Source: Macrostomum lignano (taxonomy: Eukaryota). Taken from it: 64,000 nt of DNA. The stretch covers positions 310,001 to 374,000 of the forward strand of contig NIVC01000566.1 of NCBI GenBank assembly GCA_002269645.1, written 5' to 3'. The notes under the pieces are model-generated. The model saw only the letters and a list, made by a program, of their open reading frames with translations. It was not told where the DNA came from and searched no databases. Positions 1 through 50,857 of this stretch are shown here, one piece after another (position 1 is the stretch's first letter; each line of letters begins with the position of its first letter). A program made the translations under genes and the position numbers.

Positions 1-3000
1 GCCGCATGCTCGCCAAGTATCCGCATCAGTTCGCGCCCTACACCGGCGTCATGGGCTGCGGCCCGGACCTCGGAGCCGAGCCCTACCCCGGCACGCTCAT
101 CCGACTGCCGCTGCGGACTCAGGAGCAGGCCGGCGAGTCGCAGATCTGCCAACGGGCCTACAGCGAGCAGGAGATGCGCGACCTGCTTGACAAGACGGCT
201 CAGCAAGCCCGCCACTTGCTGCTGTTCACCCAGTCCGTGTCCAGCTTCCGGCTGCTGCATCTGCGCGATGGCTTGGACGGCTCGCTGCAGACCGACACGC
301 TGCTCAAAGTGAGTCGCAGCCTGATTAAGTGCATTCGGCCGTTGCCGGGCACAAGCGAATCAGCGGATCTGCGCTCCCAGACGCGTGTACTGGCCGCTGC
401 GGCCGAATATCTGGCGGGTGACAACGGCGGCGCTGTCGATGGAAGTTTCGCTGGGCAGCTGAAGCTGCACATCGACGTGCAGATAAACGAGACGGAAGCG
501 AAGCAGGTTGGCATCGACACGAACGTCGCTATAACCGCCTCGGACAACTGGCTGCTGAGCGTAGCTCTGGGCTCGGGCGAGTCGCTGGAGATGTCGCGTC
601 AACGCGAGGGACTCAGCCTCCCCGTCGCCAGTGTCGCCATTCGCCTGTCGGCTGGCGGCACCGCGATTGAGCCGGTGAATCGCGGCGTCGCCTTCTGCTT
701 TCTGCCGCTGCCCATCGAGTCGCCGCTGCTGTTCCACGTAAACGCCGCCTTCGCAGTCACGTCCAGCCGACGCTACCTGGAGGAGGCCACCATGGACGAA
801 GCCGAGGGCCGCTGGCACCCAGGTCGCTGGAACGCCGCCCTGCTGCGCGAAGCCGCCTGCGCCGCGCTGGTGTCTGCGCTCGAGCGACTCACTGCCGAAA
901 ACATCACGGGCGCGCCTTCGATCTGGCCGCTGCTAGAGGCCAACAACGGTGTCTGGCATCCTCTGATTGAGAGTTTCTACAGGACTGTCTTCACCGAAAG
1001 TGATCGCGCTCCAAGCATCTTCTTCACCTCGGTGGGCTGGCGGCCGCTGGCTCAAGTTGTTTTTCTCGACGAATCGGCGCTGGGTGCCGCCGCATTGGGC
1101 TTTGAAGCTGCCAATGTTGTGCGCCGTCTGGCCCGGTCACTGGTTCCGGCCGGCTCCGGCCTGGCTGAAGGCTTAGCGTCCAGCGTTCAAGCCGCTGCAG
1201 TGCGCCTCAACCTGCTTGGACACAGACTCTGGTCGGGTGAAGTCTTTGTAGCCAATTTTCTGGAACAACTTAACAGTCTGTGGGATTCGTCTGATGATGA
1301 GCGTCATTTGTGCTCCGAGTTTCTTAAATTTTTGCTTAAAAATCTGAGTAGGGAAGACATCGCACCACAGGACCCAACAGTTTGGCTCATGTCGGAGGGC
1401 ATCAGGAGCATGCTTAAATCTAGCCACTTCCTGCCTGACCAATCAAATCGGCTTTGCCGAGTAAGCGATCTGCTGGATCCGGACTGCGCTGCAGCTGCTC
1501 TGTATTTCCCAACTGACTCTGTATTTCCTAGAACAGACTTCAAAGATGACTACAGTCTACGACCTGTCCTAATTTCTCTTGGGCTTCAGTCTCAAATTCC
1601 ATTTGACCATGTTCTTGAACGAGCTAATACCGTGTCAGCACTGAGCCAAGAAAATCGCCTGGAGGACGCTTTGAAGAGGGCGCGATCTCTGATGAAGTAT
1701 CTCGATCTAAACCGGACTGAATTTCAAGATCGCCTTCGTGAGCTGGCCAGCGTTGAATTTCTTCCAGCCAAGCGGAAGCCCGACGACTGCAGCCTGCACT
1801 GGCGCTCGGATGACTACCCCGTTACTCAGCTGTTCGCACCGGAAGTTCTATTCGAGTCTAAACAAGAGACATTGGGTTCTCTCTGTCAGTTAGTTCTGGA
1901 CAGCTGTGTACTTTCAGATACCAATCATTTAGCCCGAGAAGCATTGAATAAAAGCATTGGGGTACAAAAGGAAGTACCTCGCGAAATTGCTTGGGAACAG
2001 CTGCGTAGGGCGACGCAAACGTTTAGCATCGACAGTCGTCCTGTTTGCCTGGATGTGTATGAACATTTCTCTAAGCTTCTAATCAATAATCCTAAACTGG
2101 CCGATGAGATAAAGCTTGAATTCGAAGGTCTCAGCTCACCAGCAATAGTTTACTCGGATACTGGCTACTTAAAACCACACCAGGTGTCTCTGAGTTTTAA
2201 AGATCGAGAATGTCCGCCCTACCTGTATCGCCTGCCGTCTGACCTTAGAGGGGGCTATTTTAGTCATGAAAAGTATCTGCCGTTTCTTAAAGCGATTGGC
2301 GTTCTCGAAGAATTTGACTGCACCACCTACTGCAGAGTGCTTGAAGAAATACACGAGAACAAAAGTGGATCCGCTCTGACGGATAGTGAGAGAAAGAGTT
2401 GCATTGAGCTGCTAACGCGGCTGAGTGAGCTTAGCGAGCTGCCCGAGCCATCTGAAATTTTCGCTCCAGATCATGAAGGCTTCCTAGTCCGATGCTCTCA
2501 CCTTTGTTTTGGCAGCGTGAAGTGGCTCACCAAAGTCGATAAGCTGCGCTTTGCTCACAAAGACTTGGCGTACGGCGTTTGTGAGAAGTTGCGAATCCCT
2601 GATCAGAGAGTTCAAACTCTGAGAAAACATCACGTGCCGCTGCCGTTCGGCCAAAAAGAAGAGCTCACTACTCGACTCAAAGGAATTCTTCAAGGCTATC
2701 CTCTGGGCATCGAGATCTTCAAGGAGCTCGTTCAGAACGCGGACGACGCCGGTGCTACTAGGCTGCACTTCATCAACGATCGTCGCAATCTCGGAACAGA
2801 GAAGGTGCTGAGCGACGAGTGGAAGACGCTACAGGGACCGGCGCTCGTAGTTGTCAATGACACGACGTTCAATGACGAAGACATCGAAGGAATTCAGAAG
2901 CTTGGTGTCGGCTCCAAAGGAAGCCAGCCCTGGAAAACGGGGCAGTACGGCATAGGGTTCAATTGTGTCTATCACGTGACGGATGTGCCGATGTTTCTCT

Positions 3001-6000
3001 CTGACAATCGGGTCCTGTGCGTGATGGACCCCCACTGCAGGCACATGCCGCATGCCAACACAGAAAGTCCAGGCGGAATGTACAAAGATGAAGGTCTTGA
3101 CGAAGTGAGGGACGATTTTCGTGACGTTTTCGATGGATTCAAAATTACCAATGAGACCACGACCGGCTCCACTGTCTTTAGACTGCCTCTCAGAACTTTG
3201 GAAACGGCGCGCCTGTCTGAGATTTTCCCGGCTGCAAAACCTTTGAATTCTGATGACATCTGCAAACTATTTAAAGAGTTTGCTGAAGATTTGTCGGAAA
3301 TCTTACTGTTTTTGAGCAGTGTCAAGACTATTCAACTCTCTGAACTGGGCACTGATGGCAAGCTGACCAAAGTTTTTGAAACAAGCTCGACTATATCGGA
3401 CCCATCGGCCTGCATTCGATTCAGAGGCGAGTGTCAGAAAATCGGCAGGCAGCTGGTTCAGAAAGATTTCGACCCGAAACTCCTGCAATTGTGCACGCAG
3501 GAAGTGTATGAGGCTACGATCTCTACCCATAACAACTTTTTACAAGAACCTGACTCCACCAGCAGTAAGTGGATTGTAGCCCAGCAACTCGGGTTGCCAG
3601 CTGACTCAGCGAGCGTCATTCCCAGCAAAGACCAGAGCAAGCTTGGCTATGCTGTTTCCAATGGCGAGTGGAAGGCACTTCCGAAGGTAGGAGTGGCAGC
3701 GCGGCTTGATCAGAGCAAAAAGTTCCACCGAGAACACCGCGTGTTCAACCTGCTGCCGCTTCCCCTGACGACCGATCTGCCTGTTCACATCAACGGCCAC
3801 TTTGCCCTTGACCCGTCTCGCCGCAGCCTGTGGGAGGCTCATTCTAGCGATGCCTCTGCCGAATGGAACAATCTGCTAGTGAGCACTGCTCTTCCTGTGT
3901 GCTACGCAACTCTTCTGGAGGCGGCGACGCTGCGTCTACCTCTTGAAGATCCAATCAAAAGTAATGGTAATTCATCACCCTTTGAACATTATTACCGTTT
4001 GTTTCCAGAGGCAAAGGATGAGAAACCCGGCAAGTCCCACTGGAACACAATGGCGATTGAATTCTACAAAGAAGTGTTTAAAAACCGGCGCGAAGTCTTT
4101 CCAGTCGTTGATCTGACAAATCAGAGCAGGATTACCTGGCTCCCTCTTGCTCAAAGCCCTCAGTCAGTAGATGGGAAGTCCGCCTTTCTGCAAGAGGATT
4201 TGTCTGAAGATGTATCGGAAGTTTTGCAACGTCTGGGCCTGCCTCTCATCGTCAGAGGGCGTCGCTTTACTGATTGCATGAAAAGCAGCGGGCTGAGCTA
4301 TGTACCCAATGCGAATCCGGAGAATATAATCAACTACTTGAAGGGAGTCCGCTGCTCGGCGTTGCGCGACTCTCTTCCAATTCAGGTCGAGCTGACTCCA
4401 TTTGCCGGAGTACTGGGAGTCGAGACTTTGATGCACTACTTGCTCACAAATCTGTCTCCTGAGGAGCAAACCGACACTAAAGACTCTGAAAGGGACTCTG
4501 CTGAGATTCAGCGTATGGCCTCGCTAATCAGCACACCATTGAATCTGACCGCTGATGGAATGCTTCGAATTTTCAAGGCGGTGAATCCTTCATTTCTTAC
4601 AGAATACGTGCGACTGATACCAGCCAAATCTACCGACTTGCTTTCGCAGTTCTGCCACAAAAAGATTCAAGAGGTTTTTAAGCCCCCGCCACCGCCACCT
4701 TCAACCTCGCTTCCCGTCAGATATTTTTCAAGGCCCAACCGCTGTCCCAGTGCTCACAAATCCGGCCTGTACCGCAAATTCAGCATTGCTGAGTTCCGCC
4801 GTTGTCTTGGCAACTTCTTGCCTGCCTGCGGCTCTCCAAACGTCCCGTGCATTCCGCTAGCTAGATTTGAGACTCAGTTGAGGGGCTTGAAATTTGCAGA
4901 CTGGATTCGAGACGTCTGGAAATTCCTCTCAGAGGAGTACGAGATTGTACGCAAAACGTATGATAGCGCTGCTGCGGAATATTATAAAGTCAACTGCAGG
5001 CGTTATCCTCAGAAACCACCTGAAATCAAAGATGTTCTAGCTCCCGTGTCAGACGCAGCCCTAGTGCCAGCCAGCTTTGAGTGGGCATGGGAGAAACGCA
5101 TTTCATGCTGGAGTTGGCTGTTTAAAATATCGCATGTGTCTTCAGTGTACCACAAGTCTTCACCAAAACCGTTCGATTTGGAAGAGAAAATTGAAGAGGC
5201 TCTTTGTCAGCTAAAGGCTCCACTTTTAACAATCTATGACAGTAAATTGATCAAACTAGTAGGGAAATTGGAGGAGCCCAACTCGATGCTTACTGTGCTA
5301 CGCTACGCACTTAACGAAAATCGTCACAAACCGCGCCATTTGCCTTCTGCTGACATGGCGAACAGCTTTGCCTGCTTTGTTCAGCAACATCAAGGCGCAA
5401 TGGAGCAGGTGATTGACGGCAGAGACTTGATCAGTGAGCTGCAGCGTCTACCGATTTTTGTAACTCTCAGTGGCGAGTGCGTTGCGTTGGAGAATTCAGA
5501 CCCAAGAATTTTACCTGCCGACTTGGTTTTTGAGGAGATGCACCTGTGGAGTCGAGGAAGCCAGTGCGTCTTCCTAAGAAAAAACTTTGAGCTGGAGAAA
5601 TTGCATAGCCTAATGTGTTGCAACGAACTAAGTGAATTTGCAGCCTATGTTGACTTTATCCTACCGGTTTTCGACTATTTTTCAAACCATACAAAGCAAG
5701 CTCATCTGCAAAAACTGAAGTCACTCGCTTGGGATTTTCAGGGATTGAGTTATTGCAATCCTAGTGAAAGTCGCTCGTTTGAAGACGCGCTGAAAAACGC
5801 CAGAATTGTTCCGTTTCAGCAGTCCTGGTGCAGAGCCAGCAACTTTTTCGACCATCGTGTGGATATTTTTAGAGAATTCTGTCCGTCAGAAGGGTTCCTT
5901 CCACGCCAATTTCAGAAAGATGACATGCTCACACTGATGGAGCTGGCAGGACTGGTAACTGAGTGCTCACCCGATATGGTGCTGCGGTTCGCTAACGATA

Positions 6001-8183
6001 CCGCCAATCTGCCACTCGACTTGGCTCGAAACAAATCGGAGACTCTACTGAAGTTTGTAGCTAGCCAAAGCTTCGAGCAGCATCGCACAGAAGCATTCCT
6101 GTCTCAACTTGCCAGAATATCATTCATTGTGCCGGATGTGAAGCCTGAGCTGCAACAGCTGTGCGACAAGGGCTATGTACAGTTTTCTTCACTTGAAAAT
6201 TGTGTAACCCCGAAGAACGTGTACATCTGTTGGACAGTGCTTCCTGTGGCTCCCGCTTTCATCGAAGAACTGGGTTGCTTTAGAAAGTACCTGCAGGAGA
6301 AGCCCCAGAAGGACAAGTTTTTCTCGCATTTGAAGAACCTAATCGGATCTCGTCAGTTCGGCAACGCTGGTCTGGCGGACAGTTTAAAGCAAGTCAGAGG
6401 CAAGGTGATGCACAAAGTTTACTCATTCATGAGCTCACTCGATCAGGCAGCTTCAAAGCACTACCTGAATGCTCTAAGAGATTCACCGTGCATTCTCGTC
6501 GACAACTGTTCGAGATTTGCTCAGCCAAGCCAAGTCACTCTGACTGAAAGGGATGAGATCCCACCGTTTCTCTTTGCCTGCCCTTCTGGCTTCTTGCAGT
6601 ACAGCGAGCTTTTTCTAAAACTCGGAGTAACACGGCAGCCGAGCATTGAGCAGGCTGCGATGGTGCTGCAGCTAATCAAGAGCGCTGCCAAGGATGATTC
6701 ATTGCCGGTGGCCCTGTTGGAACCGACAGCAAAATGCATTTGCCTGTTGCTATCGCTTCTCCATCAGCAGGGTGCATTTCCAACCGGCATTCGCCTGTGC
6801 CTGCCAACATCAGTCAGTACGGAGGAGGAGACCCCCAAGAGCTACAAGCTGGTCGAGGCAAGCCAGGTGGTGATCAATGACGCAGTTGCATATTTCGAAC
6901 GTTTGGGAAGTGCAACGCTGTCAGGAATTCAGTTCCTGGATCTGGAATTCTGCGGAATCAGCGCAGATCAGCAGCGAACTCTTGAGCGCAACCTGAACAA
7001 GGATCTGGGTGTTCGAAGACTGTCGGAACTCGTCAAGGAACAACTGGTGCTCGGTGAGTGTCCTGAGTGCTCCGCTGGCGAGGCCGGTTGCCAGGTGTGC
7101 GCTGAATTTTCGAAGAAGCTTAGCAGCTCAGATTTTCGCAGCGGACTCGCAAGCGTCATCGTTTCCGATTCTATGGACGTAAACATTGAGAGCACATTCA
7201 AATCGGTCAATGGAATATTAGAAGTCTTTCGCATCGCTTGCAAGCAGAAATTGGTTACTGTGCTGGTAATGAATGGCACAGAGATCGACGCATCCAAGAG
7301 GCGAAGGAAGTTTTTGCTTAAAGACGGCACGATCTACATGAACCATCTCGACCGCTTGCCAGAGGGCGATGATCGGAACTTTTGGCTCAAGGAACTGATG
7401 GGAGCTGTGCACGGTCTATTGGAGCCAAGCTTCAGCCTCACCTCACAACAAACATCAAGGCTGCAGTTCATGATGATGCTTGAAGATTTCAGAAATATTC
7501 CCCAGATGCTGCAAGAGGAAAACATTCGCTTTTATGGCCAGAGCGATGACTTGAAGGACATGTGGCATGGAGTTGAGCTGGGAAGTCCGGTCAATCCGAT
7601 GGACGCATTAAAACTCGAGCCGTTGGGCTTGACACACCTGCAGCCAGACGACCTGGTAGCGTTTGCGGATGCCGAGGCCGGAGGGTCGCTGATCTACGCC
7701 CGAATCGTCGAGTCACATGGCTCAGTCGATCCCAAAAGCGATGAAGGCGAGTCTGACAGCAGCGAGTGGAGCCTCGAGTTCACCGTCGACTGCGGTCGTC
7801 AGCGCGGCCGAAAAGTGCGGGCGTCGGCGGCACTGCTGCAAGCTTTTGGAAAGATCGAGAATGAATTGGAGTTGCATGAGAACAATAGCGACTGGGAACG
7901 CAGGATGGAGCAGCAGATTCACAAAGCGGCTCGCTTATCCGATAATTTCGAACGGAAAGCCGCCACCCGGCGAATTCTCGACGCCTGCGATTCAAACCGC
8001 TTCGACGAGGAGCAGCAGCCGGATCCCGAGGCGATTCGGCGGGTGCAGAGTCTCGCTCAAGAGCAGCTGGGGGGCAGTCTGTCTAACGGCGACTGGGAGA
8101 TGATGAGCAGAAATGCTGCCAGGGCTGCTCGAAGGTATCGATCGGCGCGAGCTGAAAGTCGCATGAATGGCGACTTTGGCTTC

Positions 8184-8224
<41 letters not shown>

Positions 8225-8731
8225 CGAAGGCGGTTTGGGTGACGCCTTTTGCGGGGCCTTTAACAGCGCCAGGACGGGTGGCGGAGGTGGCGGCGGTTTT
8301 GGCGGACCTGGGTGCATTCCTCCGTCGCCAGGTGAGGCGCAGCGCTATCTAAAAACGGCCCAAGGTGACGCGGAGGCGGCCGTGGCCACGGCGACTGGAG
8401 CGGGCGCTGAACGAGCCTGCTGGGCCTGCTACCAGAGCTGGCAGGCCGCCGAGAAGGCGATGAAGGCCGTCGTGCTTGCCGAGAATCGACCGGCTGAGCG
8501 GAGTCACAACCTTATGAGCCACCTGCTTCTGGTTGGCGATGATGAGCTGCGAGACCAGCTAGAGCCGCTGGTGCACGACCTGCTGCTGTACTTCACCGGG
8601 ACCCGCGCTATCCGCGTGATGGCGCCACGCCTTACGACGCGTTCCGCGCCGAGCACGCGCGACAGGCCAGCGAGGCGGCAGCCGGCATTGTGCGACTGGT
8701 GGAGGCGGCCGTGAGCGATGCCACCGATTGA
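1..8731 (+). CDS. SACS: Sacsin-like protein, copy A (5'-partial; last large exon; 1-nt deletion near 8585 shifts the HEPN C-terminus)
   Basis: 2902-aa ORF with a sacsin SRR/Hsp90-like ATPase motif (FGQKEELTTRLKGIL...KELVQNADDAGA...QGPAL...GQYGIGFNCVYHVTDVP), PVHINGHFAL motifs and a HEPN-like end (ACYQSWQAAEKAMKA...RSHNL). Copy A reads ctgctgctgtac where copy B reads ctgctggctgtac; restoring the g gives ...HRDPRYP...SDATD* with the stop at 8729-8731. Confidence 0.9.
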
Positions 8732-9339
8732 AGACCTGGCGTTGGCTGCAGCTGATTGGGTCTGTTTGGTTTCATTGATGCCAAGACACCAAGAGTAAGC
8801 TGAGCATGAGTTGAGTTTCTTTTATGCAGAGGCGGGCAAGTTGGAGCTGGTAAATTTAGCAGAAGATTCGAGGCGATTACACTTTCAATCTAAGAAATAG
8901 CTGATGAATTTAGACCAGATGATAAAGTTTACCAGATACTAGCGACTAGAACTCTGGACCGACAAACCCATGAGAAACGTTTGCCTGCCTCAGCGGTTGA
9001 AGCGTAGGTGCAGTCAGCTTCCAGTAATCAAGTAATCAATAATTCTACGTCGTGTTTTTATTCCGTTGGGAAAATGATGCATTGTCTATTCAATTGTCTA
9101 TTTAAAATAATGTCTGCTTTAATCAAGCCTTTAACTTAATTTAAGGTTTTTTTTCTACTTTGTATTGGTTTGATGTCTAGTTTATTAAATTAACGCCTAA
9201 TTAATCCAGTCACATTTAAATAGACTGGTAAACCTAGAAATTGCATGCTCTTAATTATCTGCAAGGTTGGGAGAAAATTGGGCCAAAGCCAATTGCCTAA
9301 AATCTTATAAGAACGATTCCAAAATAACCCACGTGTTGT

Positions 9340-9695
9340 TCTCCCGCTTATCAAATTCAAAGTGTCTTTTGGAAGAAAAAGATCCCCTCTCCTTCCCTTC
9401 ATCATTTCTCCTATCCCGGAGCCTCTTCTGTCTTCTCTTTCATCTCTCCCCTCTCCTCCCTCCCCTCTTTCCCCTTTTTTCTCTCTTCCACTCTCTCCCC
9501 TCTCCCCTCTACTGTCTCCACTTTCTCTCCTCTCTCCGCTTATCTTCTATCTCTTCTTTTATCTCATCCCATCTATCTTCTCTCATTTCTCATCTTTCAT
9601 TCCCTCTCATTTCCACTTTTATCAGACCCGGAGTCATAAATTGGATTCTTTTTCTGCCCTTGAGGTAAAAAAGTTTGCCGAGCCCGGTTCGATCA
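9340..9695. mobile_element. CT-rich non-autonomous element with a hAT-like end (related copies at about 32040-32375, 47247-47770 reversed, 60745-61190)
   Basis: Pyrimidine-rich body ending in gaggtaaaaaagtttgccga, the reverse complement of the caggggttggcaaactttttacctc end seen at 47247. No paired TIR or TSD confirmed. Confidence 0.4.
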
Positions 9696-10619: not shown

Positions 10620-11080
10620 GACAGCATGCAAGCATCCCTCCCCCCAGATAACAAGCATCCCCCCCCCCAGATAGCAAGCACCCCCAGATAGCAAGCATCC
10701 ACCTAATAGCAAGCACCCCCAGATAGCAAGCATCCACCTAATAGCAAGCACCCCCAGATAGCAGGCACCCCCAGATAGCAAGCATCCACCTAATAGCAAG
10801 CACCCCCAGATAGCAGGCACCCCCAGATAGCAAGCATCCACCTAATAGCAAGCACCCCCAGATAGCAGGCACCCCCAGATAGCAAGCATCCACCTAATAG
10901 CAAGCACCCCCAGATAGCAGGCACCCCCAGATAGCAAGCATCCACCTAATAGCAAGCACCCCCAGATAGCAGGCACCCCCAGATAGCAAGCATCCACCTA
11001 ATAGCAAGCACCCCCAGATAGCAGGCACCCCCAGATAGCAAGCATCCACCTAATAGCAAGTATCGATCCTTAAATAGCAA
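10620..11080. repeat. 17/18-bp minisatellite (cccccagatagcaagca) organised as a 52-bp higher-order repeat
   Basis: cccccagatagcagg recurs with a 52-nt period (e.g. 10751, 10803). Confidence 0.9.
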
Positions 11081-11124
11081 GCATCCACCAGACAATAAGT
11101 ATCTAGTGCAACAATTTCCTTAGC

Positions 11125-18952: not shown

Positions 18953-18979
18953 GTTGCATAGGCTCGCAACACAAAATTT

Positions 18980-25600: not shown

Positions 25601-28600
25601 GATCCAAAGGAAGCCAGCCCTGGAAAACGGGGCAGTACGGCATAGGGTTCAATTGTGTCTATCACGTGACGGATGTGCCGATGTTTCTCTCTGATAATCG
25701 GGTCCTGTGCGTGATGGACCCCCACTGCAGGCACATGCCGCATGCCAACACAGAAAGTCCAGGCGGAATGTACAAAGATAAAGGACTTGACGAAGTGAGG
25801 GACGATTTTCGTGACGTTTTGATGGATTCAAAATCAGCAATGAGACCACGACCGGCTCCACTGTCTTTAGACTGCCTCTCAGAACTTTGGAAACGGCGCG
25901 CCTGTCTGAGATTTTCCCGGCTTCAAAACCTTTGAATTCTGATGATATCTACAAACTATTTAAAAAGTTTGCTGAAGATTTGGCGGAAATCTTACTGTTT
26001 CTGAGCAGCGTCAAGACTATTCAACTCTCTGAACTGGGCACTGATGGCAAGCTGACCAAAGTTTTTGAAACAAGCTCGACTATATCGGACCCATCGGCCT
26101 GCATTCGATTCAGAGGCGAGTGTCAGAAAATCGGCAGGCAGCTGGTTCAGAAAGATTTTGACCCGAAGCTCTTGCATTCGTGCACGCAGGAAGTGTATGA
26201 GGCTACGATCTCTACCCATAACAGCTTCTCACAAAAACCTGACTCCACCAGCAGTAAGTGGATTGTAGCCCAGCAACTCGGGTTGCCAGCTGACTCAGCG
26301 AGCGTCATTCCCAGCAAAGACCAGAGCAAGCTTGGCTATGCTGTTTCCAATGGCGAGTGGAAGGCACTTCCGAAGGTAGGAGTGGCAGCGCGACTTGATC
26401 AGAGCAAAAAGTTCCACCGAGAACACCGCGTGTTCAACCTGCTGCCGCTTCCCCTGACGACCGATCTGCCTGTTCACATCAACGGCCACTTTGCCCTTGA
26501 CCCGTCTCGCCGCAGCCTGTGGGAGGCTCATTCTAGCGATGCCTCTGCCGAATGGAACAATCTGCTAGTGAGCACTGCTCTTCCTGTGTGCTACGCAACT
26601 CTTCTGGAGGCGGCGACGCAGCGTCTACCTCTTGAAGATCCAATCGAAAGTGATGGTAATTCATCACCCTTTGAACATTATTACCGTTTGTTTCCAGAGG
26701 CAAAGGATGAGAAACCCGGCAAGTCCCACTGGAACACAATGGCGATTGAATTCTACAAAGAAGTGTTTAAAAACCGGCGCGAAGTCTTTTCAGTCGTTGA
26801 CCTGACTAATCAGAGCATGATTAGCTGGCTCCCTCTTGCTCAAAGCCCTCAGTCAGTAGATGGGAAGTCCGCCTTTCTGCAAGAGGATTTGTCTGAAGAT
26901 GTGTCGGAAGTTTTGCAACGTCTGGGCCTGCCTCTCATCGTCAGAGGGCGTCGTTTTACTGACTGCATGAAAAGCAGCGGGCTGAGCTATGTACCCAATG
27001 CGAATCCCGACAATATAATCAACTACTTGAAGGGAGTCCGCTGCTCGGCGTTGCGCGACTCTCTTCCAATTCAGGTCGAGCTGACTCCATTTGCCGGAGT
27101 ACCGGGAGTCGAGACTTTGATGCACTACTTGCTCACAAATCTGCCTCTTGAGGATCAAACCGACACTAAAGACTCTGAAAGGGACTCTGCTGAGATTCGG
27201 CGTATGGCCTCGCTAATCAGCACACCATTGAATCTTAATGCTGATGGAATGCTTCGAATTTTCAGAACGGAGAATCTTTCATTTCTCACAGAATACGTGC
27301 GACTGATACCAGCCAAATCTACCGACTTGCTTTCGCAGTTCTGCCACAAAAAGATTCAAGAGGTTTTTAAGCCCCCGCCACCGCCACCTTCAACCTCGCT
27401 TCCCGTCAGATATTTTTCAAGCCCCAACCGCTGTCCCAGTGCTCACAAATCCGGCCTGTACCGCAAATTCAGCATTGCTGAGTTCCGCCGTTGTCTTGGC
27501 AACTTCTTGCCTGCCTGCGGCTCTCCAAACGTCCCGTGCATTCCGCTAGCTAGATTTGAGACTCAGTTGAGGGGCTTGAAATTTGCAGACTGGATTCGAG
27601 ACGTCTGGAAATTTCTCTCAGAGGAGTACGAGATTGTACGCAAAACGTATGATAGTGCTGCTGCGGAATATTATAAAGTTAACCGCAGGCGTTATCCTCA
27701 GAAACCACCTGAAATCAAAGATGTTCTAGCTCCTGTGTCCGACGCAGCCCTTGTGCCAGCCAGCTTTGAGTGGGAGAAACGCATTTTGAGCTGCGATTTC
27801 TTGTTTAAAGTATCGCATGCAGCTTCAGTGTACCACAAGTCTACACTTAGACCGCAAGATTTGGAAAAGGAAATCGAAGAGGCTCTTTGTCAGCTAAAGG
27901 CTCCAGTTTTAACAATCCATGACAATAAATTGATCAAACTAGTAGGGAAATTGGAGGAGCCCAACTCAATGCTTGCTGTGCTCCAATACGCACTTAACGA
28001 AAATCCTCACAAACCGCGCCATTGCCTTCTGCTGACATGGCAAACAGCTTCGCCTGCTTTGTTCAGCAACATCCAGGCGAAATGGAGCAGGTGATTGGCG
28101 GCAGAGACTTGATCAGTCAGCTGCAGCGTTTACCGATTTTTGTAACTCTCAGTGGCGAGTGCGTTGCGCTGAAGAACTTAAGCCCCAGAATTCTACCGGC
28201 CGACTTGGTGTTTGAGGAGATGCACCTGTGGAGCCGAGCAGCCCAGTTCGTCTTCTTAAGAAAAAACTTTGACCTGGAGAGATTACATCGCCTAATGGGA
28301 TGCGAGAAGGTGAGCAAATTTGCAGCTTATGCTGAATTTATCCTACCCGCGTTCGACAATTTCTCAGACCATACAAAACAAGCTCACCTTTGGAAACTTG
28401 AGTTTCTGGCTTTTGATTTTCAAAGCTTGCGCCGTCGCAATCCTAGTGAAAGTCGCTCGTTTGAGGACTCGCTGAAAAACGCTAGAATTGTTCCGTTTCA
28501 GCAGTCCTGGTGCAGAGCCAGCAACTTTTTCGACCATCGTGTGGACATTTTTAGAGAACTCTGTCCGTCCGAAAAGTTCCTTCCACGCCTATTTCAGCAA

Positions 28601-31404
28601 GATGACATGCTCACACTGATGAAGCTGGCAGGACTGGTAACTGAGTGCTCACCCGATATGGTGTTGTGGTTCGCTAACGATAGTGCCAATCTGCTACTCG
28701 ACTTGGCTCGAAACAAATCGGAGACTCTACTGAAGTTTGTAGCTAGCCAAAGCTTCGAGCAGCATCGCACAGAAGCATTCCTGTCTCAACTTGCCAGAAT
28801 ATCATTCATTGTGCCGGATGTGAAGCCTGAGCTGCAACAGCTGTGCGACAAGGGCTATGTACAGTTTTCTTCACTTGAAAATTGTGTAATCCCGGAGAAC
28901 GTGTACATCTGTTGGACAGTGCTTCCTGTGGCTCCCGCTTTCATCGAAGAACTGGGTTGCTTCAGAAAGTACCTGCAGGAGAAGCCCCAGATGGACAAGT
29001 TTTTCTCGCATTTGAAGAACCTGATCGGATCCCGTCAGTTCGGCAAGGCTGGTCTGGCGGACAGTTTTAAGCAAGTCAGAGGCAAGGTGATGAACAAAGT
29101 TTACTCATTCATGAGTTCACTCGATCAGGCAGCTTCGGAGCGCTACCTGAATGCTCTAAGAGATTCACCGTGCATTCTCGTCGACAACGGTTCGAGATTT
29201 GCTCAGCCAAGCCAAGTCACTCTGACCGAAAGGGATGAATCCCACCGTTTCTCTTTGCCTGCCCTTCTGGCTTCTTGCAGTACAGCGAGCTTTTTCTAAA
29301 ACTCGGAGTAACACGGCAGCCGAGCATTGAGCAGGCTGCGATGGTGCTGCAGCTAATCAAGAGCGCTGCCAAGGATGATTCATTGCCGGTGGCCCTGTTG
29401 GAACCGACAGAAAAATGCATTTGCCTGTTGCTATCGCTTCTCCATCAGCAGGGTGCATTTCCAACCGGCATTCGCCTGTGCCTGCCCACCTCAGTCAGTA
29501 CGGAGGAGCAGACCAACAAGAGCTACAAGTTGGTCGAGGCTAGCCAGGTGGTGATCAATGACAGAGTGGCTTATTTCGAACGTTTGGGGGGTGCAACGCT
29601 GTCCAGAATTCAGTTCCTGGATCTGGAATTCTGCGGAATCAGCGCAGATCAGCAGCGAACTCTCGAACGCCACCTGAACAAAGATCTCGTGGTTCCAAGG
29701 CTGTCGGAACTCGTTAAAGAACAACTGGTGCCCGATGAGTGTCCTGAGTGCTCCGCTGGCGAGGCTGGTTGCCAGGTGTGCACTGAATTTTCGAAGAAGC
29801 TTAGCAGCTCAGATTTTCGCAGCGGACTCGCAAGCGTTATCGTTTCCGATTCGACGGAAACAAAAATTGAGAGCACATTCAAATCGGTCAATGGAATATT
29901 TGAAGACTTTCGCATTGCTTGCAAGCAGAAATTGGTTACTGTGCTGGTTATGAATGGCACTGAGATCGACGCATCCAAGAGGCGAAGGAAGTTTTTGCTT
30001 AAAGACGGCGCGATCTACATGAACCATGTCGACCGCCCGCCAGAGGGCGATGATCGGAACTTTTGGCTCAAGGAACTGATGGGAGCTGTGCACGGTCTGT
30101 TGGAGCCAAGCTTCAGCCTCACCTCACAACAAACATCAAGGCTGCAGTTCATGATAATGTTTGAAGATTTCAGAAATATTCGCCAGATGCTGCAAGAGGA
30201 AAACATTCGCCTTTATGGTCTGAGCGATGACTTGAAGGACATGTGGCATGGAGTTGAGCTGGGAAGTCCGGTAAGTCCGATGGACGCATTGAAACTCGAG
30301 CCGTTGGGCTTGACGCACCTGCAGCCAGACGACCTGGTAGCGTTTGCGGATCCCGAGGCCGGAGGGTCGCTGATCTACGCCCGAATCGTCGAGTCACATG
30401 GCTCAGTCGATCCCAAAAGCGATGAAGGCAAGTCTGACACCGGCGAGTGGAGCCTCGAGTTCACCGTCGACTGCGGTCGTCAGCGCGGCCGAAAAGTGCG
30501 GGCGCCGGCGGCACTGCTGCAAGCTTTTGCAAAGATCGAGAATGAATTGGAGTTGCATGAGAACAATAGCGGCTGGGAACTCAGGATGGAGCAGCAGATT
30601 CACAAAGCGGCTCGCTTATCCGATAACTTCGAACGGAAAGCCGCCACACAACGGATTCTCGACGCCTGCGATTCAAACCGCTTCGACGAGGATCCCGAGC
30701 AGCCGGATCCCGAAGCGATTCGGCGGGTGCGGAGTCTCGCTCAAGAGCAGCTAGGGGGCAGTCTCTCTAACGGCGACTGGGAGATGATGAGCAGAAATGC
30801 TGCCAGGGCTGCTCGAAGGTATCGATCGGCGCGAGCTGAAAGTCGCATGAATGGCGACTTTGGCTTCGGTGGCGGCGGCGGCGGCGGCGGTGGCGGCGGT
30901 GGCGGTTTGGGTGGCGCCTTTTGCGGGGCCTTTAACAGCGCCAGGACGGGTGGCGGCGGTGGCGGCAGTTTTGGCGGACCTGGGTGCATTCCTCCGTCGC
31001 TGGGTGAGGCGCAGCGCTATCTACAGACGGCCCAAGGTGACGCAGAGGCGGCCGTGGCCACTGCGACTGGAGCGGGCGCTGAACGAGCCTGCTGGGCCTG
31101 CTACCAGAGCTGGCAGGCCGCCGAGAAGGCGATGAAAGCCGTCGTGCTTGCCGAGAATCGACCGGCTGAGCGGAGTCACAACCTTATGAGCCACCTGCTT
31201 CTGGTTGGCGATGAGGAGCTGCGAGACCAGCTGGAGCCGCTGGTGCACGACCTGCTGGCTGTACTTCACCGGGACCCGCGCTATCCGCGTGGTGGCGCCA
31301 CGCCTTACGACGCGTTCCGCGCCGAGCACGCGCGACAGGCCAGCGAGGCGGCGGCCGGCATTCTGCGACTGGTGGAGGCGGCCGTGAGCGATGCCACCGT
31401 TTGA
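22627..31404 (+). CDS. SACS: Sacsin-like copy B, exon 3 (three 1-nt deletions split it into ORFs 22696-25935, 25887-28094, 28022-29299, 29275-31404); about 3080 aa in total if corrected
   Basis: Acceptor cgtcag|atc is in frame with the ATG at 22696; collinear with copy A at an offset of about 22.69 kb. Single bases are missing at about 25820, 28022 and 29238 relative to copy A. The HEPN end is intact (HRDPRYP...SDATV*). Confidence 0.88.
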
Positions 31405-33750
31405 AGACCTGGCGTTGGCTGCAGCTGATTGGGTCTGTTTGGTTTCATTGATGCCAAGAGACCAAGAGTAAGCTGAGCATGAGTTGAGTGTCCTTTATGC
31501 AGAGGCGGGCAAGTTGGAGCTGGTAAATTTAGCAGAAGATTCGAGGCGATTACACTTTCAATCTAAGAAATAGCTGATGAATTTAGACCAGATGATAAAG
31601 TTTACCAGATACTAGCGACTAGAACTCTGGACCGACAAACCCATGAGAAACGTTTGCCTGCCTCAGCGGTTGAAGCGTAGGTGCAGTCAGCTTCCAGTAA
31701 TCAAGTAATCAATAATTCTACGTCGTGTTTTTATTCCGTTGGGAAAATGATGCATTGTCTATTCAATTGTCTATTTAAAAAAAATGTCTGCTTAATCAAG
31801 CCTTTAACTTAATTTAAGGTTTTTTTTTTCCTAGTTTGTATTGGTTTCATGTCTAGTTTATTAAATTAACGCCTAATCAATCCAGTCACATTTAAATGGA
31901 CTGGTAAACCTAGAAATTGCATGCTCTTAATTATCTGCAAGGTTGGGAGAAAATTGGGCCAAAGCCAATTGCCTAACATCTTATAAGAACGATTCCAAAA
32001 TAAGCCACGTGTCAGTGATGTTCACCCAAATGATGTTCATCAAATTCAAAGTGTCTTTTGGAAGAAAAAGATCCCCTCTCCTCCCTCCATCATTTCTCCT
32101 ATCCCGAGCCTCTTCTGTCTTCTCTTTCATCTCTCCCCTCTCCTCCCTCCCCTTTTCCCTTTCTCTCTCTTCCACTCTCTCCCTCTACTCCTCCACGTTC
32201 TCCCCTTTCTCCACTCTCCTCTCCGCTTATCTTCTATCTCTTCTTTTATCTCATCCCATCTATCTTCTCTCATTTCTCATCTTTCATTCCCTCTCATTTC
32301 CACTCTTATCAGACCCGGAGTCATGAATTGGATTCTTTTTCTGCCCTTGAGGTAAAAAAGTTTGCCGAGCTAGGTTCGATCAGAGACTCCGGGAACGCCA
32401 TCGCACGACCTACCGGTATCACTATCACCCCCTCTGCACTAATATTGTCATGGACAGCTTCTCTCAAAAAACTGAATTTTTTCTCTATTTGTCGATTTTA
32501 TTACCAAGCTAAAGTGTTATCACTTATCAACATGGTAGAAGTGCCAAGTTCCCATATTTGATAAATTTTATTACATCTGCTTAGTTTTTGCCAGAAGAGA
32601 CCCCAGCACACGAAACTCAAGGACACGGTGGAACTCTTTGTTGCAAACCTTCTGAAACAAGAATTACTGAAGTAAGTCACTGTCCCTTAAGACCAGACGA
32701 GAAATTGATTCGAAATAAGAGAGTTGGTGTTCCTAATTACTAAATATTATTTTTATCATATTCGTGACATGTTCCTCATTGGTTTTGCTGATGTCTTGCA
32801 TACTTAATCGGCTTAGTTTCTATAGAATGCGCTCGTTCTTAAACAGTGTAATTAGTTTGAATCCTTTTACTTAGACTTCGGCAGACTTCTTTAATATTTT
32901 ACTTAAAAGGCAATAAAAGCTACATGATAATTTCATCTCCTTACTTAAAAATTTATTCAGTTCGATTTTTACTCTCCTAATACTGTAGGTGTTTACGACG
33001 TTTTAAAATACTGCTCTGTCTATTTTATTCAAAAATACACCTTTCGACGTGAATTAACTCAAACTGTGTTTTGCCTTTGTCCTTACTATTAATAAGTTTC
33101 GTTTGAATGTGACTTAAGATTTAGGAATTTATTAAAAAATATTGGAAGTTCCTGGGATTATATTACCGCCGGTTTCAACAGCTTGTAAATTATATTTTGC
33201 AACGCACAAGCTGCAAATCTGTTGGTTTTCGTGTGTCAACTGCAGTCGGATGGACCGATAAGAAAGTTCTTTTCGACTTAATAAAAAAATTGGGGTCTTA
33301 CGGCAATTGACTGCCACAATCTGACCACCATAATTTGACTGCGGACAATATGGCTGCGGCAATTTGACTGCCGACAATATGGCTGCGGCAAATTGACTGC
33401 CGACAATATGGCTGCGGCAATCTGACTGCCGACAATATGACTGCGGCAATTTGACTGCCGACAATATGACTGCGGCAATTTGACTGGCTCAAGTGCTACA
33501 TGTACATCCTTTTTATATATGAATTGATCGTATTTATGCAGGACTAACAATTCGCTCTTTACGAGTGAAGATGCAAGCTATGAATACATTTGCCTTTCAG
33601 CAATACATGCATGTATATGTTATGACGAATGTCACATCTATACGTAGCTGCGTTCTGTTGAGCTGAGTGCTCTTTATAAAGCTAGCTTAGCATTACCTTT
33701 AGCTTTGACTTTTAGTCTATTAGGCTATTAATAGATTTTATAGTACGAGT

Positions 33751-34451
33751 CAAGGACGACTCAAGTAGAAGGACGGGAAACCTCGTTTCTTAGAAAATTT
33801 TAGAAGGCCGGTTTTCCCGAAAAATTACACTAGCTACGGAGATAGGAAGTTTTCATTTTTTTCAGCACAAAATTGTTATTGCTTTTGATAGGAGGCAGAT
33901 CCAGTGTTCATCTTTTGATATATTGTGCCTTTCTTATTGCTCTATCGATATTCATAAAGCTTTTCGTTCAAAGAAGTAGGATTCTATGTTAATTTTTTAT
34001 TCTACGTACATTTCCTGTACCTAAAAATAATAAAAATGCATTGCACAGCTCGAAATCTTTGGTTTTATGAATCCATTTTATCATTTGTGCTACGCATATT
34101 TGTTAAAGTCAGCTAAGAATTATAAAATAGACGCATAAAACCAATGAGCCGAGCCGTGCTATTCTAATGGTTTTTAGACACAATACATGCGCAAATGTAC
34201 GTAGAATAAAAAAGTAACATAGAATCCTAATTTTTTAAATGGAGAGCTTTACGAATATTGATAGAGCAGTAAGAAAGGCACAATATATCAAAAGATGAAC
34301 ACTGGATCTGCCTCCTATCAAAAGCAATATCAATTTTTGTGCTGAAAAAATGAAAACTTCCTATCTCCGTAGTGTACTTTTTCGGAAAAACCGGCCTTCA
34401 CAAATTTTCCAAGAAAAGAGGTTTCCCGTCCTTCTACTTGAGTCGTCCTTG
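33751..34451. mobile_element. P-superfamily-like MITE with about 270-bp TIRs
   Basis: TIR caaggacgactcaagtagaaggacgggaaacc / ggtttcccgtccttctacttgagtcgtccttg; 8-bp TSD gtacgagt (33743-33750) / gtacgagc (34452-34459); empty site gaacgcgt at 12115-12122 in the copy A flank. Confidence 0.8.
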
Positions 34452-34659
34452 GTACGAGCCTGTGGAATTTCTTTTAAATCTGGAAGATTCAATTGGATTA
34501 AAATATATGAGATTAATATGACATAGGAGAAAGAAGGAACCTTGAAATATTGAAATCTTGTGCATGTCGATTCAAAAAGTCAGCAAGCAATTTTTATAGG
34601 AGAGTAAAAAAACATGCTAAAATTGCAGAAATAAGCGTTTATTAGTAAGTTCCGTTCAA

Positions 34660-35700
34660 CTTTGTTATTCGTATCTCTCTGTCTCCTTCGCTCCTTTCTG
34701 ATTGGCTGTTCGATCTCGCCTCATTCGATCCTTAGTCGCGCATTCCACCCCTCCTTTTCTTACTTGCAATTAACCCCTTCTGTCTGTCTGCTTTGTTTTC
34801 AACTCTAATTTAATACAAAGTACATGTAGATGTAGTTCACTTTTTTACAGAAACATCGATCCGTTTTCAACCCCTGATGTTTTCTCTGGTCTGCCCCTGT
34901 TTTCGGCCTCGGTTCCTCCATTATTTTATTACCTCCGATTGGCTCATCCAACCCCCTTCGTTTAATATCGAACTGCGAGGGTCTGCGCCCTTCGCGTGTG
35001 CTTTTGCTCCCTGTTAAGTGGGATCTCTGCTTTTCTCAAAACTATACCGAAACTATACCTATACCAGTACAGAGTCGGTCTGTACTCTGGTTGTCTCGTC
35101 GGGCGTGGCGTTCTGGTTCTTTGGGGTCTGGGCAGCGGCGCACTGTCAGATCCGCTGCGACTCGCATCGAATTGCTAAAGCTGAGCTTCATTTATCTGCT
35201 TCAATTGTCTTCTTTCACTCAGCCAGTCTCTTCGGCTATTACTCATCTGCTGCTACTTATTCATATATTCGCTGGTTTTGAGCTTGGAACTCCGCTAGCA
35301 CTGAGTCTGTTGCTCCTTCCTTTTGTGCTCATGCTGTTGGCTACTTGCTTGTCGTCCAAATGTCGTCGGAAGTCAGAAAGCGAGCACCGATATGAGCAGC
35401 AGTCACTCCAGCTACATGTGCAGTGCTAAAGCCGAGAAGCTGTTGTCAAGTCTTTGGCTTAATGCGGAATCTGAAGAAGAGGCCTGTTCAGACTTGCTCA
35501 GGGAGAAGTTCAGCTCCTTGGAAAGTGCAGATGAACTCGTGCAGGAAGTGTTACGCTCGTAGAGGATAAGATAAAAGCTCAGCAGACGGAGAGCTGCACT
35601 GTCACTGTAAATACGAGCGTACTGTCACACTGAGAGAACACTGCCTGCCGCTTTGCACTTCTTATGCTCTCGAAGGCCGACTTCACTTCTATGGAGGACT
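34660..35700. repeat. About 1-kb segment duplicated at 40230-41410 (extended shared flank of copies B and C; possible decayed retroelement 5' region)
   Basis: Shared blocks such as ccttagtcgcgcattcca and gtgtgcttttgctccctgtta, and ORF remnants MSSSHSSYMC.AKAEKLLS..WLNAE.EEEACSDLLREK in both. Confidence 0.7.
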
Positions 35701-35709
35701 TGCTTTTTA

Positions 35710-36217
35710 GTGCTGATATTCATAAAGCTTTTCGTTCAGAAAATTATAGTATTCTGTTAATTTTTTATCCTACGTATTCAATACAATCACATATATATCC
35801 TGTGCCTAAAAACCATTAAAAATGGCGCGGCTCAGCTCATTGGTTTTATGAATCTACTCGTATCTTGTCATTCTTAGCTGACTGTGTAACAATATGTGTG
35901 ACAGAGATGATAAAATAGATTCATAAAACCAAAGATTCGAGATGTGCCATGCTTTTTTATGATTTTTATGTACAGGAAATGTACTTAAATTAAAAAATCA
36001 ATACTAATTTTTTGAAAAGAAAGCTTTATGAAGATAAATAGAGCTATGCGAATGGCATAGCATATCAAAAGATGAACATTGGGTCTTGCCTCCTATCGAA
36101 AGAAATAACAAGAAAATGAAAACTCCCTAAACACCATAGTGAATTTTTCGGCGAAAAGTGGCCTTCGAAACATTTTTTTTTGATTTCGAGTGTTGCGTCC
36201 TACTTTAGTAGTCTTTG
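35710..36217. mobile_element. Older, left-truncated relative of the 33751 MITE in inverted orientation
   Basis: gatattcataaagcttttcgttca and catatcaaaagatgaaca blocks are shared; the internal part is the reverse complement of 34020-34170; degenerate right TIR ...gtagtctttg. Confidence 0.65.
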
Positions 36218-36267
36218 TGCACGTACATGATTACGCATCTTAAATATCCTTACCATTCTGACAAGAG

Positions 36268-37583
36268 CTTTGGCTCAAGGAACTGATGGGAGCTGTGCAC
36301 GGTCTATTGGAGCCAAGCTTTAGCCTCACCTCACAACAAACATTAAGGCTGCAGTTCATGATGATGCTTGAAGATTTCAGAAATATTCGTCAGATGCTGC
36401 AAGAGGAAAACATTCGCTTTTATGGCCTGAGCGATGACTTGAAGGACGTGTGGCATGGAGTTGAGCTGGGAAGTCCGGTAAGTCCGATGGACGCATTGCA
36501 ACTCGAGCCGTTGGGCTTGACGCACCTGCAGCCAGATGACGTGGTAGCGTTTGCGGATCCCGAGGCCGGAGGGTCGCTGATCTACGCCCGAATCGTCGAG
36601 TCACATGGCTCAGTCGATCCCAAGAGCGACGAAGGCGAGTTTGACAGCGGCGAGTGGAGCGTCGAGTTCACCATCGACTGCGGTCGTCAGCGCGGCCGAA
36701 AAGTGCGGGCGCCGGCGGCACTGCTGCAAGCTTTTGCAAAGATTGAGAATGAATTGGAGTTGCATGAAAACAATAGCGACTGGGAACGCAGGATGGAGCA
36801 GCAGATTCACAAAGCGGCTCGCTTATCCGATAATTTCGAACGGAAAACCGCCACTCAACGGATTCTCGACGCCTGCGATTTAAACCGCTTCGACGAGGAC
36901 CAGCAGCCGGATCCCGAGGCAATTCGGCGGGTGCGGAGTTTCGCTCAAGAGCAGCTGGGGGGCAGTATCTCTAACGGCGACTGGGAGATGATGAGCAGAA
37001 ATGCTGCCAGGGCTGCTCGAAGGTATTGATCGGCGCGAGCTGAAAGTCGCATGAATGGCAAATTCGGTTTTGGTGGCGGCGGCGGTGGTAGTGGTGCCTT
37101 TTGCGGGGCCTTTAACGGCGCCAGGACGGGTGGCGGAGGTGGCGGCGGTTTTGGCGGACCTGGGTGCGTTCCTCCGTCGCCGGGCGAGGCGCAGCGCTAT
37201 CTACAGACGTCCCAAGGTGACGCAAAGGCGGCCGTGGCCACGGCGACCGCGGCGGCCGCTGAACGAGCCTGCTGGCCTGCTACCAGAGCTGGCAGGCCGC
37301 CGAGAAGGCGATGAAGGCCGTCGTGCTTGCCGAGAATCGACCGGCTGAGCGGAGTCACAACATTTTGAGTCACCTGCTTCTCGTTGGCGATGAGCAGCTG
37401 CGGGACCAGCTGGAGCCGCTGGTGCACGACCTGCTTGCTGTACTTCACCGGGACCCGCGCTATCCGCGTGATGGCGCCACGCCTTACGACGCGTTCCGCG
37501 CCGAGCACGCGCGACAGGCCAGCGAGGCGGCGGCCGGCATTGTGCGACTGGTGGAGGCGGCCGTCAGCGATGCCACCGATTGA
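36268..37583 (+). pseudogene. SACS: Sacsin-like copy C, 3' remnant (J-like + HEPN region only)
   Basis: Starts abruptly at tttggctcaaggaactg (equivalent to 7381/30062); nonsense cga>tga at about 37027; 1-nt deletion at about 37275; ends ...SDATD*. Confidence 0.9.

Positions 37584-50825: not shown

Positions 50826-50857
<32 letters not shown>

Follow-up and report, generated by a model that had tools for sequence, protein, structure and literature searches.

A 64,000-nucleotide stretch of the Macrostomum lignano genome (contig NIVC01000566.1 of assembly GCA_002269645.1, positions 310,001 to 374,000; hereafter the window) carries a genuine head-to-tail cluster of giant sacsin-like genes. Two near-complete copies, A and B, are followed by a remnant, C, and a second, related locus, here called L001, repeats the order of the array. 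The evidence set out below makes it probable that the window contains a genuine tandem array of a Macrostomum-specific sacsin-like family, which has been reshaped by gene conversion, transposable element (TE) insertion, deletion and purifying selection.

Three head-to-tail copies with shared flanks had been predicted from the sequence of this stretch, and both self-BLAST of the window and MAFFT alignment confirm the layout. Copy A (1-10042) aligns with copy B (22691-32726) at 95.3% identity over 10,076 columns in the self-BLAST, and at 95.9% identity across ungapped columns, with 22 indels, in the MAFFT alignment. The offset between the two is 22,690 bp, in agreement with the predicted unit of about 22.7 kb. 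The third copy has, as was also proposed, been reduced to a remnant. The region 36269-37834 is 92.5% identical to B 30062-31656 and 93-95% identical to A 7381-8983, and its coding homology extends from 36271 to a stop codon at 37581-37583, precisely where the predicted array had been said to end. All three copies are followed by 3' flanks that are homologous at 72-85% (A 8715-12200, B 31405-34539 and C 37584-39079). Within these flanks, A 10086-12200 corresponds to B 32731-34539, and C is followed, at 37937-39079, by a version that has diverged further. A further part of the B-side flank (34655-35543) matches 40236-41280 downstream of C.

Independent support for this arrangement comes from L001, which comprises 66 kb of Mlig_3_7 contig NIVC01000891.1 and encodes the database match P0004. 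It is 92-97% identical to the window, is a distinct locus and has the same array order: the 3' end of copy 0, a collinear spacer, copy 1, a chimeric copy 2, long terminal repeat (LTR) retrotransposon fragments, copy 3 and a distal flank that corresponds to window 37895-43669. The spacer between A and B is collinear with that between L001 copies 0 and 1 at 94-97% identity, and intron 1 of L001 copy 1 holds the same satellite and the same DIRS-like retrotransposon (97.6% identity) as intron 1 of B. Copies 1 and 3 of L001 have open giant-exon open reading frames (ORFs) of 2891 and 2883 residues with complete HEPN domains, which means that intact members of the family exist. In L001 copy 2 (31082-37089), the promoter and exon 1 lead straight into the 3' half of exon 3 (the equivalent of A 3980 onward), and the HEPN region contains a frameshift. 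This copy looks like the product of unequal or illegitimate recombination.

The two loci also differ in content. A long interspersed nuclear element (LINE) in the first spacer (L001 6216-9332) and the LTR-retrotransposon fragments (L001 39870-41870) are private to L001, and a MITE-like element (after miniature inverted-repeat transposable element) is private to the window. Between B and C, the window has about 27 kb less than L001, which corresponds to copy 2, the LTR fragments and most of copy 3. Remnant C is the positional equivalent of L001 copy 3, with 37895-41270 matching L001 59548-62937 at 92.7%. These differences indicate that copies have been lost or gained between related loci, while the shared tandem order makes mis-assembly of the window unlikely. 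Haplotype mis-assembly had been named at the outset as something to exclude, and a second contig with the same order, a collinear spacer and private TEs argues against it. A genome-wide count of sacsin-like loci had been proposed as well. For the database models P0001, P0003, P0005, P0006 and P0007, identity to any of A, B and L001 copies 1 and 3 is no higher than 90-95%, indicating that further paralogues exist: at least five gene models are distinct from the four full copies.

The structure of the gene can be read from copy B by tblastn with M. lignano models and inspection of the junctions. It has three exons, and its introns are all GT-AG and phase 0. Exon 1 (15664-15906, forward strand, as for all features of the sacsin-like genes; 81 codons, MSSESESDGD...ELIQNADDAGA...) encodes the start of ATPase module 1, is a 100% tblastn match to residues 1-81 of P0006 and is followed by a GT donor at 15907. 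Intron 1 (15907-22176) is 6.27 kb long, having been inflated by a 7-bp satellite and the DIRS-like element. Exon 2 (22177-22407; 77 codons, ...GKFGLGFNAVYNLTD...) contains the glycine-rich ATP-lid motif of module 1. Beyond intron 2 (22408-22626, junctions read), exon 3 (22627-31404; 8.8 kb) encodes the rest of module 1, module 2, a long helical region, a glycine-rich linker and a complete HEPN domain. A full gene thus has three exons, two of them short and the third 8.8 kb long, and its protein product is about 3,080 residues in length.

Copy A represents the 3' part of the giant exon 3 (1-8731). It begins about 184 codons into the protein, where the window edge cuts the gene inside exon 3, and its ORF as assembled (6-8714, 2902 residues) runs off the left edge. 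The encoded protein is 98.2% identical to M. lignano model P0002. Copy C (36271-37583) retains the last ~435 codons, including the HEPN domain, and starts at 'WLKELMGAVHG'; the 5' 85% is gone.

Lesions are present in all three copies. Copy A has a single-base deletion at 8585 that is private to it in the A/B alignment, the undeleted state being found in B, in C and in all L001 copies. The frame is lost after '...LVHDLL', replacing the last two HEPN helices with 43 out-of-frame residues; in the frame shared by all other copies, the stop codon of A would lie at 8729-8731. Exon 3 of B is split by three single-base deletions, at 25821 (relative to A and the L001 copies), 28022 (TTT to TT) and 29239, into ORFs 22696-25935, 25887-28094, 28022-29299 and 29275-31404. 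No stop codon occurs in the 2,850 codons of B's followed frame, and P0006, a B-like database model, is open across all three deletion sites. Copy C carries an in-frame stop codon at 37027-37029 and a frameshift before about 37275, ahead of its terminal stop at 37581-37583, and is a real pseudogene. The four single-base deletions in A and B reflect either very recent inactivation or errors of assembly, since the private substitutions of these copies are as constrained as those of intact copies, P0006 reads through and all of the lesions are 1-bp deletions.

The predicted protein shares its core architecture with sacsin. The Pfam family SACS (PF25794, SRR) scores 298.8 bits in A, 252.7 bits in the first B piece and 481.4 bits in P0002, in two stretches each. 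These are two Hsp90-like (GHKL) ATPase modules, known as 'sacsin repeating regions', and a long helical region follows them. Direct reading finds the GHKL motif ExxxNAxD and the glycine-rich lid GxxGxG intact in both modules, for which ATPase activity is predicted. In module 1 the motifs are KELIQNADDAGA and GKFGLGFNAVY, encoded by exons 1 and 2; in module 2 they are KELVQNADDAGA and GQYGIGFNCVY (ELVQNADDAGA...GQYGIGFNCVY in B exon 3). At the C-terminus, the HEPN family PF05168 scores 28.5 bits in B (profile positions 2-115 of 117) and 25.2 bits in L001 copy 1, against a cut-off of 22. In A, only the first half of the domain is matched (21.4 bits, profile 3-67 of 117), because of the deletion at 8585. 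The HEPN segment 'ENRPAERSHNL' contains the R-x5-H motif 'RPAERSH', which is present in A, B, C and every L001 copy. In alignment, its histidine falls in line with the one found in other invertebrate sacsins, while the motif is missing from shark SACS. The retained R-x5-H is compatible with a predicted RNase. When the C-terminal 709 residues were compared with the PDB using phmmer, the matches were glycine-run low-complexity hits and weak hits to the prokaryotic HEPN structures 1ufb, 1wol and 1o3u (E 0.04-0.7), with no sacsin J or HEPN structure among them.

Several other domains were looked for. No Pfam DnaJ match was found at E <= 0.01, and a profile built from 24 animal sacsin C-termini aligns over positions 10-204 and 371-505 while skipping 205-370, which is the J-domain stretch. 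Similarly, BLASTP against the amphioxus C-terminus aligns the HEPN domain alone, and no HPD tripeptide occurs in the stretch corresponding to the J domain. The lack of a J domain suggests that any coupling to Hsp70 differs from that of vertebrate sacsin. At its other end, the protein starts 40 residues before the first ATPase motif, and P0002 has no ubiquitin-family match. Most invertebrate relatives lack the N-terminal ubiquitin-like domain too, so its absence does not exclude membership of the sacsin family. Pfam searches detected no DEATH, TIR, NACHT or other immune adaptor domains.

Database matches place these genes in a lineage of their own. The ORF of A matches seven protein clusters at 80-99% identity, all from M. 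lignano; for these seven models, a cluster look-up gave UniRef A0A1I8H193 as the sole accession. The next matches, at 24-32% identity and up to 98% query coverage, are sacsin-like proteins of amphioxus, corals, molluscs, echinoderms and shark. Such a drop, from 80-99% to about 24-32%, upholds the proposal of a lineage-specific expansion. The contrast with single-copy vertebrate SACS, which the original prediction had drawn, is irrelevant for a flatworm. Invertebrates commonly have more than one sacsin-like gene: amphioxus, mussels and a freshwater mussel each have several sacsin-like proteins, and the match list contains several distinct ones per species for Branchiostoma, Mytilus and Sinanodonta. 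Literature searches combining sacsin with Macrostomum, flatworm or planarian gave no results.

The M. lignano genome itself probably accounts for some of the copy number. About 85% of it is present in three paralogous copies, with ~2.2% single-nucleotide polymorphism divergence genome-wide and 1.1% in coding sequence (PMC10733133), and some multiplicity is therefore expected. The tandem duplication probably predates the genome-wide triplication, since A and B differ by 4% (dS, the synonymous divergence, of 0.08), above the divergence typical of the paralogous copies. The window and L001 may be related as subgenome copies or as older segmental duplicates, or L001 may come from another strain. 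The intronic DIRS-like element shared by the two loci is, together with exon 2, 97.6% identical between them despite a flank divergence of 5-7%. One possibility is that inter-locus conversion is the source of this high similarity.

Gene conversion has left an imprint along the coding sequence. Distances among the four full copies (A, B and L001 copies 1 and 3) are star-like, at 4.0-5.5%, with A and B closest, and the nearest neighbour shifts from block to block along the gene. For example, at A 4980-5480, the nearest relative of B is L001 copy 2 (3.9%, versus 9.1% to A), while at the 3' end A, B and L001 copy 1 group together. Remnant C sides with A at the 5' end and with L001 copy 3 at the 3' end. 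Quartet-informative sites are divided 82:48:50 over the three possible groupings and are clustered along the gene, with 77 runs observed against 116.8 +/- 6.0 expected and none of 2000 shuffles giving as few. The copies do not cluster by orthology (position), and the informative sites conflict. These conflicting, clustered sites and the changing nearest neighbour indicate substantial gene conversion, and a mode of evolution that mixes birth-and-death with concerted evolution. The birth-and-death process that had been claimed for the array is borne out by copy gain and loss relative to L001, by remnant C and by the chimeric copy; the conversion mosaics mean that it did not act alone, concerted evolution having contributed too.

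One block departs from this general pattern. At A 4980-5980 (B 27670-28670), all five copies compared are 9-15% divergent from one another, versus 2-6% elsewhere. Here dS is ~0.25, the nonsynonymous divergence (dN) is ~0.10 and their ratio (omega) is 0.39. The block was considered as evidence of diversifying selection and rejected, because dS is raised as much as dN. Instead, it looks like the outcome of older coalescence or of conversion from distant copies: the segment may have escaped gene conversion, or may have received sequence from distant paralogues.

The sacsin-like copies are under moderate purifying selection. Pairwise and sliding-window Nei-Gojobori estimates (150-codon windows) give a dS of 0.083, a dN of 0.030 and an omega of 0.365 for A versus B (bootstrap 0.29-0.45, with the frame followed across the single-base deletions), and omega is 0.35-0.42 in all six pairs among A, B and L001 copies 1 and 3. 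In the ATPase core of module 2, omega falls to 0.07. No positive selection was found, as no 150-codon window has an omega above 0.64. The ratio of private nonsynonymous to synonymous substitutions is 1.22 in A and 1.20 in B, compared with 1.28 and 1.16 in the intact L001 copies and a neutral expectation of ~3.3. Indels tell the same story: the comparison of A with B shows 8 indels for 349 substitutions in coding sequence and 15 for 61 in the 3' flank, making coding indels about ten times rarer per substitution. The inference of moderate purifying selection draws on this deficit together with the omega values.

Several observations weigh against a genuine, selectively maintained array. Both near-complete copies in the window are frameshifted as assembled (one lesion in A, three in B), and no window copy is demonstrably intact, the 5' end of A lying outside the window. 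An omega near 0.4 is fairly relaxed for a chaperone. The flank divergence of 5-7% between the window and L001 exceeds the 2.2% typical of M. lignano paralogous blocks, and both the RNase activity and the sensor model are putative. One reading that deserves attention, possible though on balance doubtful, is that the window array is a dying locus in which A and B are recent pseudogenes like C, with function residing in intact copies elsewhere, such as L001 copies 1 and 3. Each of the four frame-breaking single-base deletions occurs in A or B alone, and C is an undoubted pseudogene. Moreover, L001 copies 1 and 3, which belong to a published assembly, extend over 8.7 kb each without a frameshift, so indel errors are not ubiquitous in such assemblies, and redundancy among many paralogues would relax selection on single copies. 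However, constraint on the private substitutions of A and B matches that in intact copies (a ratio of 1.2 versus ~3.3 under neutrality), and B's followed frame contains no nonsense substitution. Each of the four lesions removes a single base, which is the error seen most often in long-read assemblies, and the frame of P0006 stays open at the three B sites. A real inactivation would have to be very recent. It is far less likely, indeed hardly credible, that A and B represent one gene, its haplotype or subgenome variants having been wrongly placed in tandem. M. lignano assemblies are known to misrepresent the copy number of paralogous blocks (PMC10733133). Nevertheless, the independent contig L001 repeats the tandem order, its spacer is collinear and it has TE insertions of its own, and the divergence between A and B (4% of nucleotides, dS 0.08, 22 indels) exceeds the coding-sequence divergence of 1.1% that is typical of subgenome copies. 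In addition, the spacer holds unique sequence together with B's own promoter and exon 1, and downstream lies a third copy that shares the flank but is truncated differently.

The original prediction had cast these genes as stress or innate-defence effectors. Spelt out, this reading would make them dedicated innate-immune or anti-transposon effectors, in which the ATPase would sense a pathogen cue, the HEPN RNase would execute the response and paralogue diversity would be selected. We regard this as unlikely. The R-x5-H motif of the HEPN domain is retained, the family is multi-copy with turnover between paralogous loci, and the block at A 4980-5980 is divergent as if shielded from homogenisation. 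There are also precedents: sponge sacsin-like proteins are fused to DEATH domains and have been proposed to act in conflict (PMC3710099), a sacs-like gene of lumpfish is induced by poly(I:C) (PMC11357929), and an oyster sacsin-like gene lies in the region of top fixation index (FST) for herpesvirus survival (PMC9437489). Against this, omega never exceeds 1 in any window, dS rises with dN in the divergent block (0.25 and 0.10), which points to older coalescence or distant conversion and not to positive selection, and no DEATH, TIR, NACHT or other immune adaptor domain is present. Polyploidy alone explains part of the copy number. A stronger version, in which J-domain-less, catalytically competent HEPN effectors would serve antiviral or anti-transposon defence, with the 1-kb divergent block as a specificity region kept by selection, is more improbable still. 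The idea of defence or RNase function is not new for sacsins, having been published in 2013, when sacsins were proposed to limit translation under unfolded-protein stress, with some paralogues acting in host-pathogen conflict (PMC3710099). Several animals retain the HEPN motif, and humans have lost it (Anantharaman et al. 2013, PMC3710099); the human sacsin HEPN, which lacks it, binds RNA (bioRxiv 10.64898/2025.12.18.694329). Nothing in the window discriminates a stress-chaperone from a defence role, and expansion alone says nothing about immunity.

For the preferred reading of a genuine array, the following history can be proposed. Tandem duplication of a ~20-kb unit would have created the array before the paralogous genome copies of M. 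lignano separated, as the matching array order in L001 suggests. Since then, gene conversion and unequal crossing-over have turned the copies into mosaics, and TEs and satellites have inserted into intron 1 and the spacers. A deletion of ~27 kb would have left remnant C, and the four single-base deletions, if they are very recent inactivations and not assembly errors, would have hit A and B. Moderate purifying selection acted on the coding sequence all along. Regarding function, homology with sacsin suggests that the ATPase modules could work as an ATP-driven, chaperone-like clamp or sensor. By analogy with other HEPN RNases, which are active as dimers, a dimeric HEPN domain might bind or cleave RNA, damping translation under proteotoxic or infection stress.

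Within the array, the spacers and intron 1 carry repeats, and the spacers also hold shared flank. The A-to-B spacer (8732-15663) consists of the shared 3' flank to ~12200, minisatellites detected by a repeat scan (10664-11090, 11128-11337, 11674-11849 and 12549-13271), the MITE-like element and the promoter region of B. The B-to-C spacer (31405-36270) comprises the shared 3' flank to ~34539 and short repeats, and the downstream flank of the array (37584-43669) is common to the A and B flanks up to ~39079 and collinear with the distal flank of L001. The MITE-like element (13745-14413; ~670 bp) has 28-nt terminal inverted repeats and is missing at the collinear position in L001, where the alignment has a gap from window 13745 to 14412. 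In intron 1 of B, ~140 copies of AATAAGG form a 7-bp satellite (16119-17098), which is found at the same place in L001 at 92.9% identity and must predate the split of the two loci.

The same intron contains the DIRS-like tyrosine-recombinase retrotransposon (17611-22030, ~4.4 kb, reverse strand), inserted antisense to the gene. Its ORFs, all on the reverse strand, encode a SAP/gag-like protein (21387-21869), a reverse transcriptase (19298-20230) and a putative tyrosine recombinase (17915-18952), and the element is delimited by direct repeats of 140 bp (17611-17752 and 21883-22030) that are 92% identical. Pfam supports the reverse transcriptase (RVT_1, E=1.7e-11) and SAP (E=1.2e-11) assignments; that of the recombinase is tentative, since the Phage_integrase match is weak (E=0.0069) and below the cut-off. 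No further coding TE emerged within 1-37583 when LINE, LTR and DIRS proteins served as tblastn queries. The array spacers otherwise hold mainly minisatellites, and no TE interrupts coding sequence, the DIRS-like element and the satellite both being intronic. The earlier description of dense TE insertion was thus overstated: 1-37583 contains one autonomous DIRS-like and one MITE-like element, neither of them in coding sequence. Downstream of the array, a fragment resembling the C-terminus of LINE ORF2 (41841-42008, reverse strand; 40% identity over 60 residues) is also present at the collinear place in L001. ARAGORN reported an 86-nt tRNA-Arg(CCG) within the coding sequence of A (1121-1206, forward strand), where Rfam finds no tRNA, and this call is probably a false positive.

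The rest of the window holds other genes and repeats. A 140-residue putative ORF (43342-43764, reverse strand) contains a proline-rich stretch followed by a transmembrane-like segment, with a weak, sub-threshold match to PRIMA1 (E=0.008). Further along, an ORF of 447 residues (50441-51784, reverse strand) combines an RNA recognition motif, a long arginine/serine- and proline-rich low-complexity region and a Periphilin C-terminal domain (Pfam E=1.6e-28), and looks like a periphilin-like host gene. The ORF at 61159-61944 (reverse strand) matches profile positions 164-374 of 375 in the transmembrane domain of Na+/H+ exchangers (Pfam E=5.7e-32) and is probably one exon of an Na+/H+ exchanger (NHE) gene. 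Satellites flank or sit within the region of this gene: a 44-bp satellite of ~77 copies with 97% identity (56991-60358), a related short 46-bp array 2.6 kb further on (62985-63134) and a 45-bp array (62076-62585).

The molecular function of sacsin is still unclear, and the size of the protein hampers its study. A flatworm amenable to RNA interference and transgenesis, with a stripped-down sacsin (two modules, no J domain and a motif-bearing HEPN), would offer a tractable test of the 2013 proposal, according to which chaperone-like sensing was linked to the cleavage of RNA in ancestral sacsins. The locus also serves as a clear case study, within a neopolyploid genome, of a 20-kb unit evolving by tandem duplication, gene conversion, the gain of intronic TEs and a large deletion.

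Compared with vertebrate sacsin (SACS, the product affected in ARSACS, the Charlevoix-Saguenay form of autosomal recessive spastic ataxia), the flatworm protein is likewise giant and encoded mostly by one very large exon, with homology over up to 98% of the query. It is only ~24-25% identical, however, and has two ATPase modules where the vertebrate protein has three. It also lacks the N-terminal ubiquitin-like domain and any J domain detectable with Pfam or the 24-sacsin profile. Its HEPN domain keeps the R-x5-H motif that the vertebrate HEPN lacks (PMC3710099), and the gene is multi-copy and tandem, whereas the vertebrate gene is single-copy. The HEPN domain itself passes the gathering score of the prokaryotic HEPN-T or HepT-type family (PF05168) and has an R-x4-6-H-type motif followed by N-L. 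Unlike its prokaryotic counterparts, it is part of a fusion with a eukaryotic chaperone-like protein of 2,900 residues and lacks a nucleotidyltransferase antitoxin as partner, and its RNase activity is putative. The intronic retrotransposon resembles known DIRS-like elements in having a reverse transcriptase and, tentatively, a tyrosine recombinase in place of a DDE integrase, with 140-bp direct repeats at its ends.

As a gene family, the array resembles other tandem families with mixed birth-and-death and concerted evolution, sharing with them copy-number differences, a truncated pseudogene, a chimeric copy and conversion mosaics. It differs in the unusually large size of its unit (~20 kb per gene) and shows no evidence of diversifying selection. 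The closest parallels are the sacsin-like families of other invertebrates (amphioxus, bivalves, corals and a sponge), in which a genome holds several paralogues, some of them sharing a chromosome or separated by a few genes. Examples include P0012, P0013 and P0015 of B. lanceolatum, P0055 and P0063 of M. californianus, and S. woodiana locus tags 004497 and 004503. Many of these proteins have a HEPN domain bearing the conserved histidine, and RNase and stress or conflict roles were proposed for them in 2013. The Macrostomum copies, by contrast, form their own clade, being at least 90% identical to each other and about 30% or less to all others, and they carry no DEATH domain and lack the J domain that those relatives keep ('WHPDKN' consensus). 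These differences aside, the array is an ordinary young multigene family, kin to the known invertebrate sacsin-like families.

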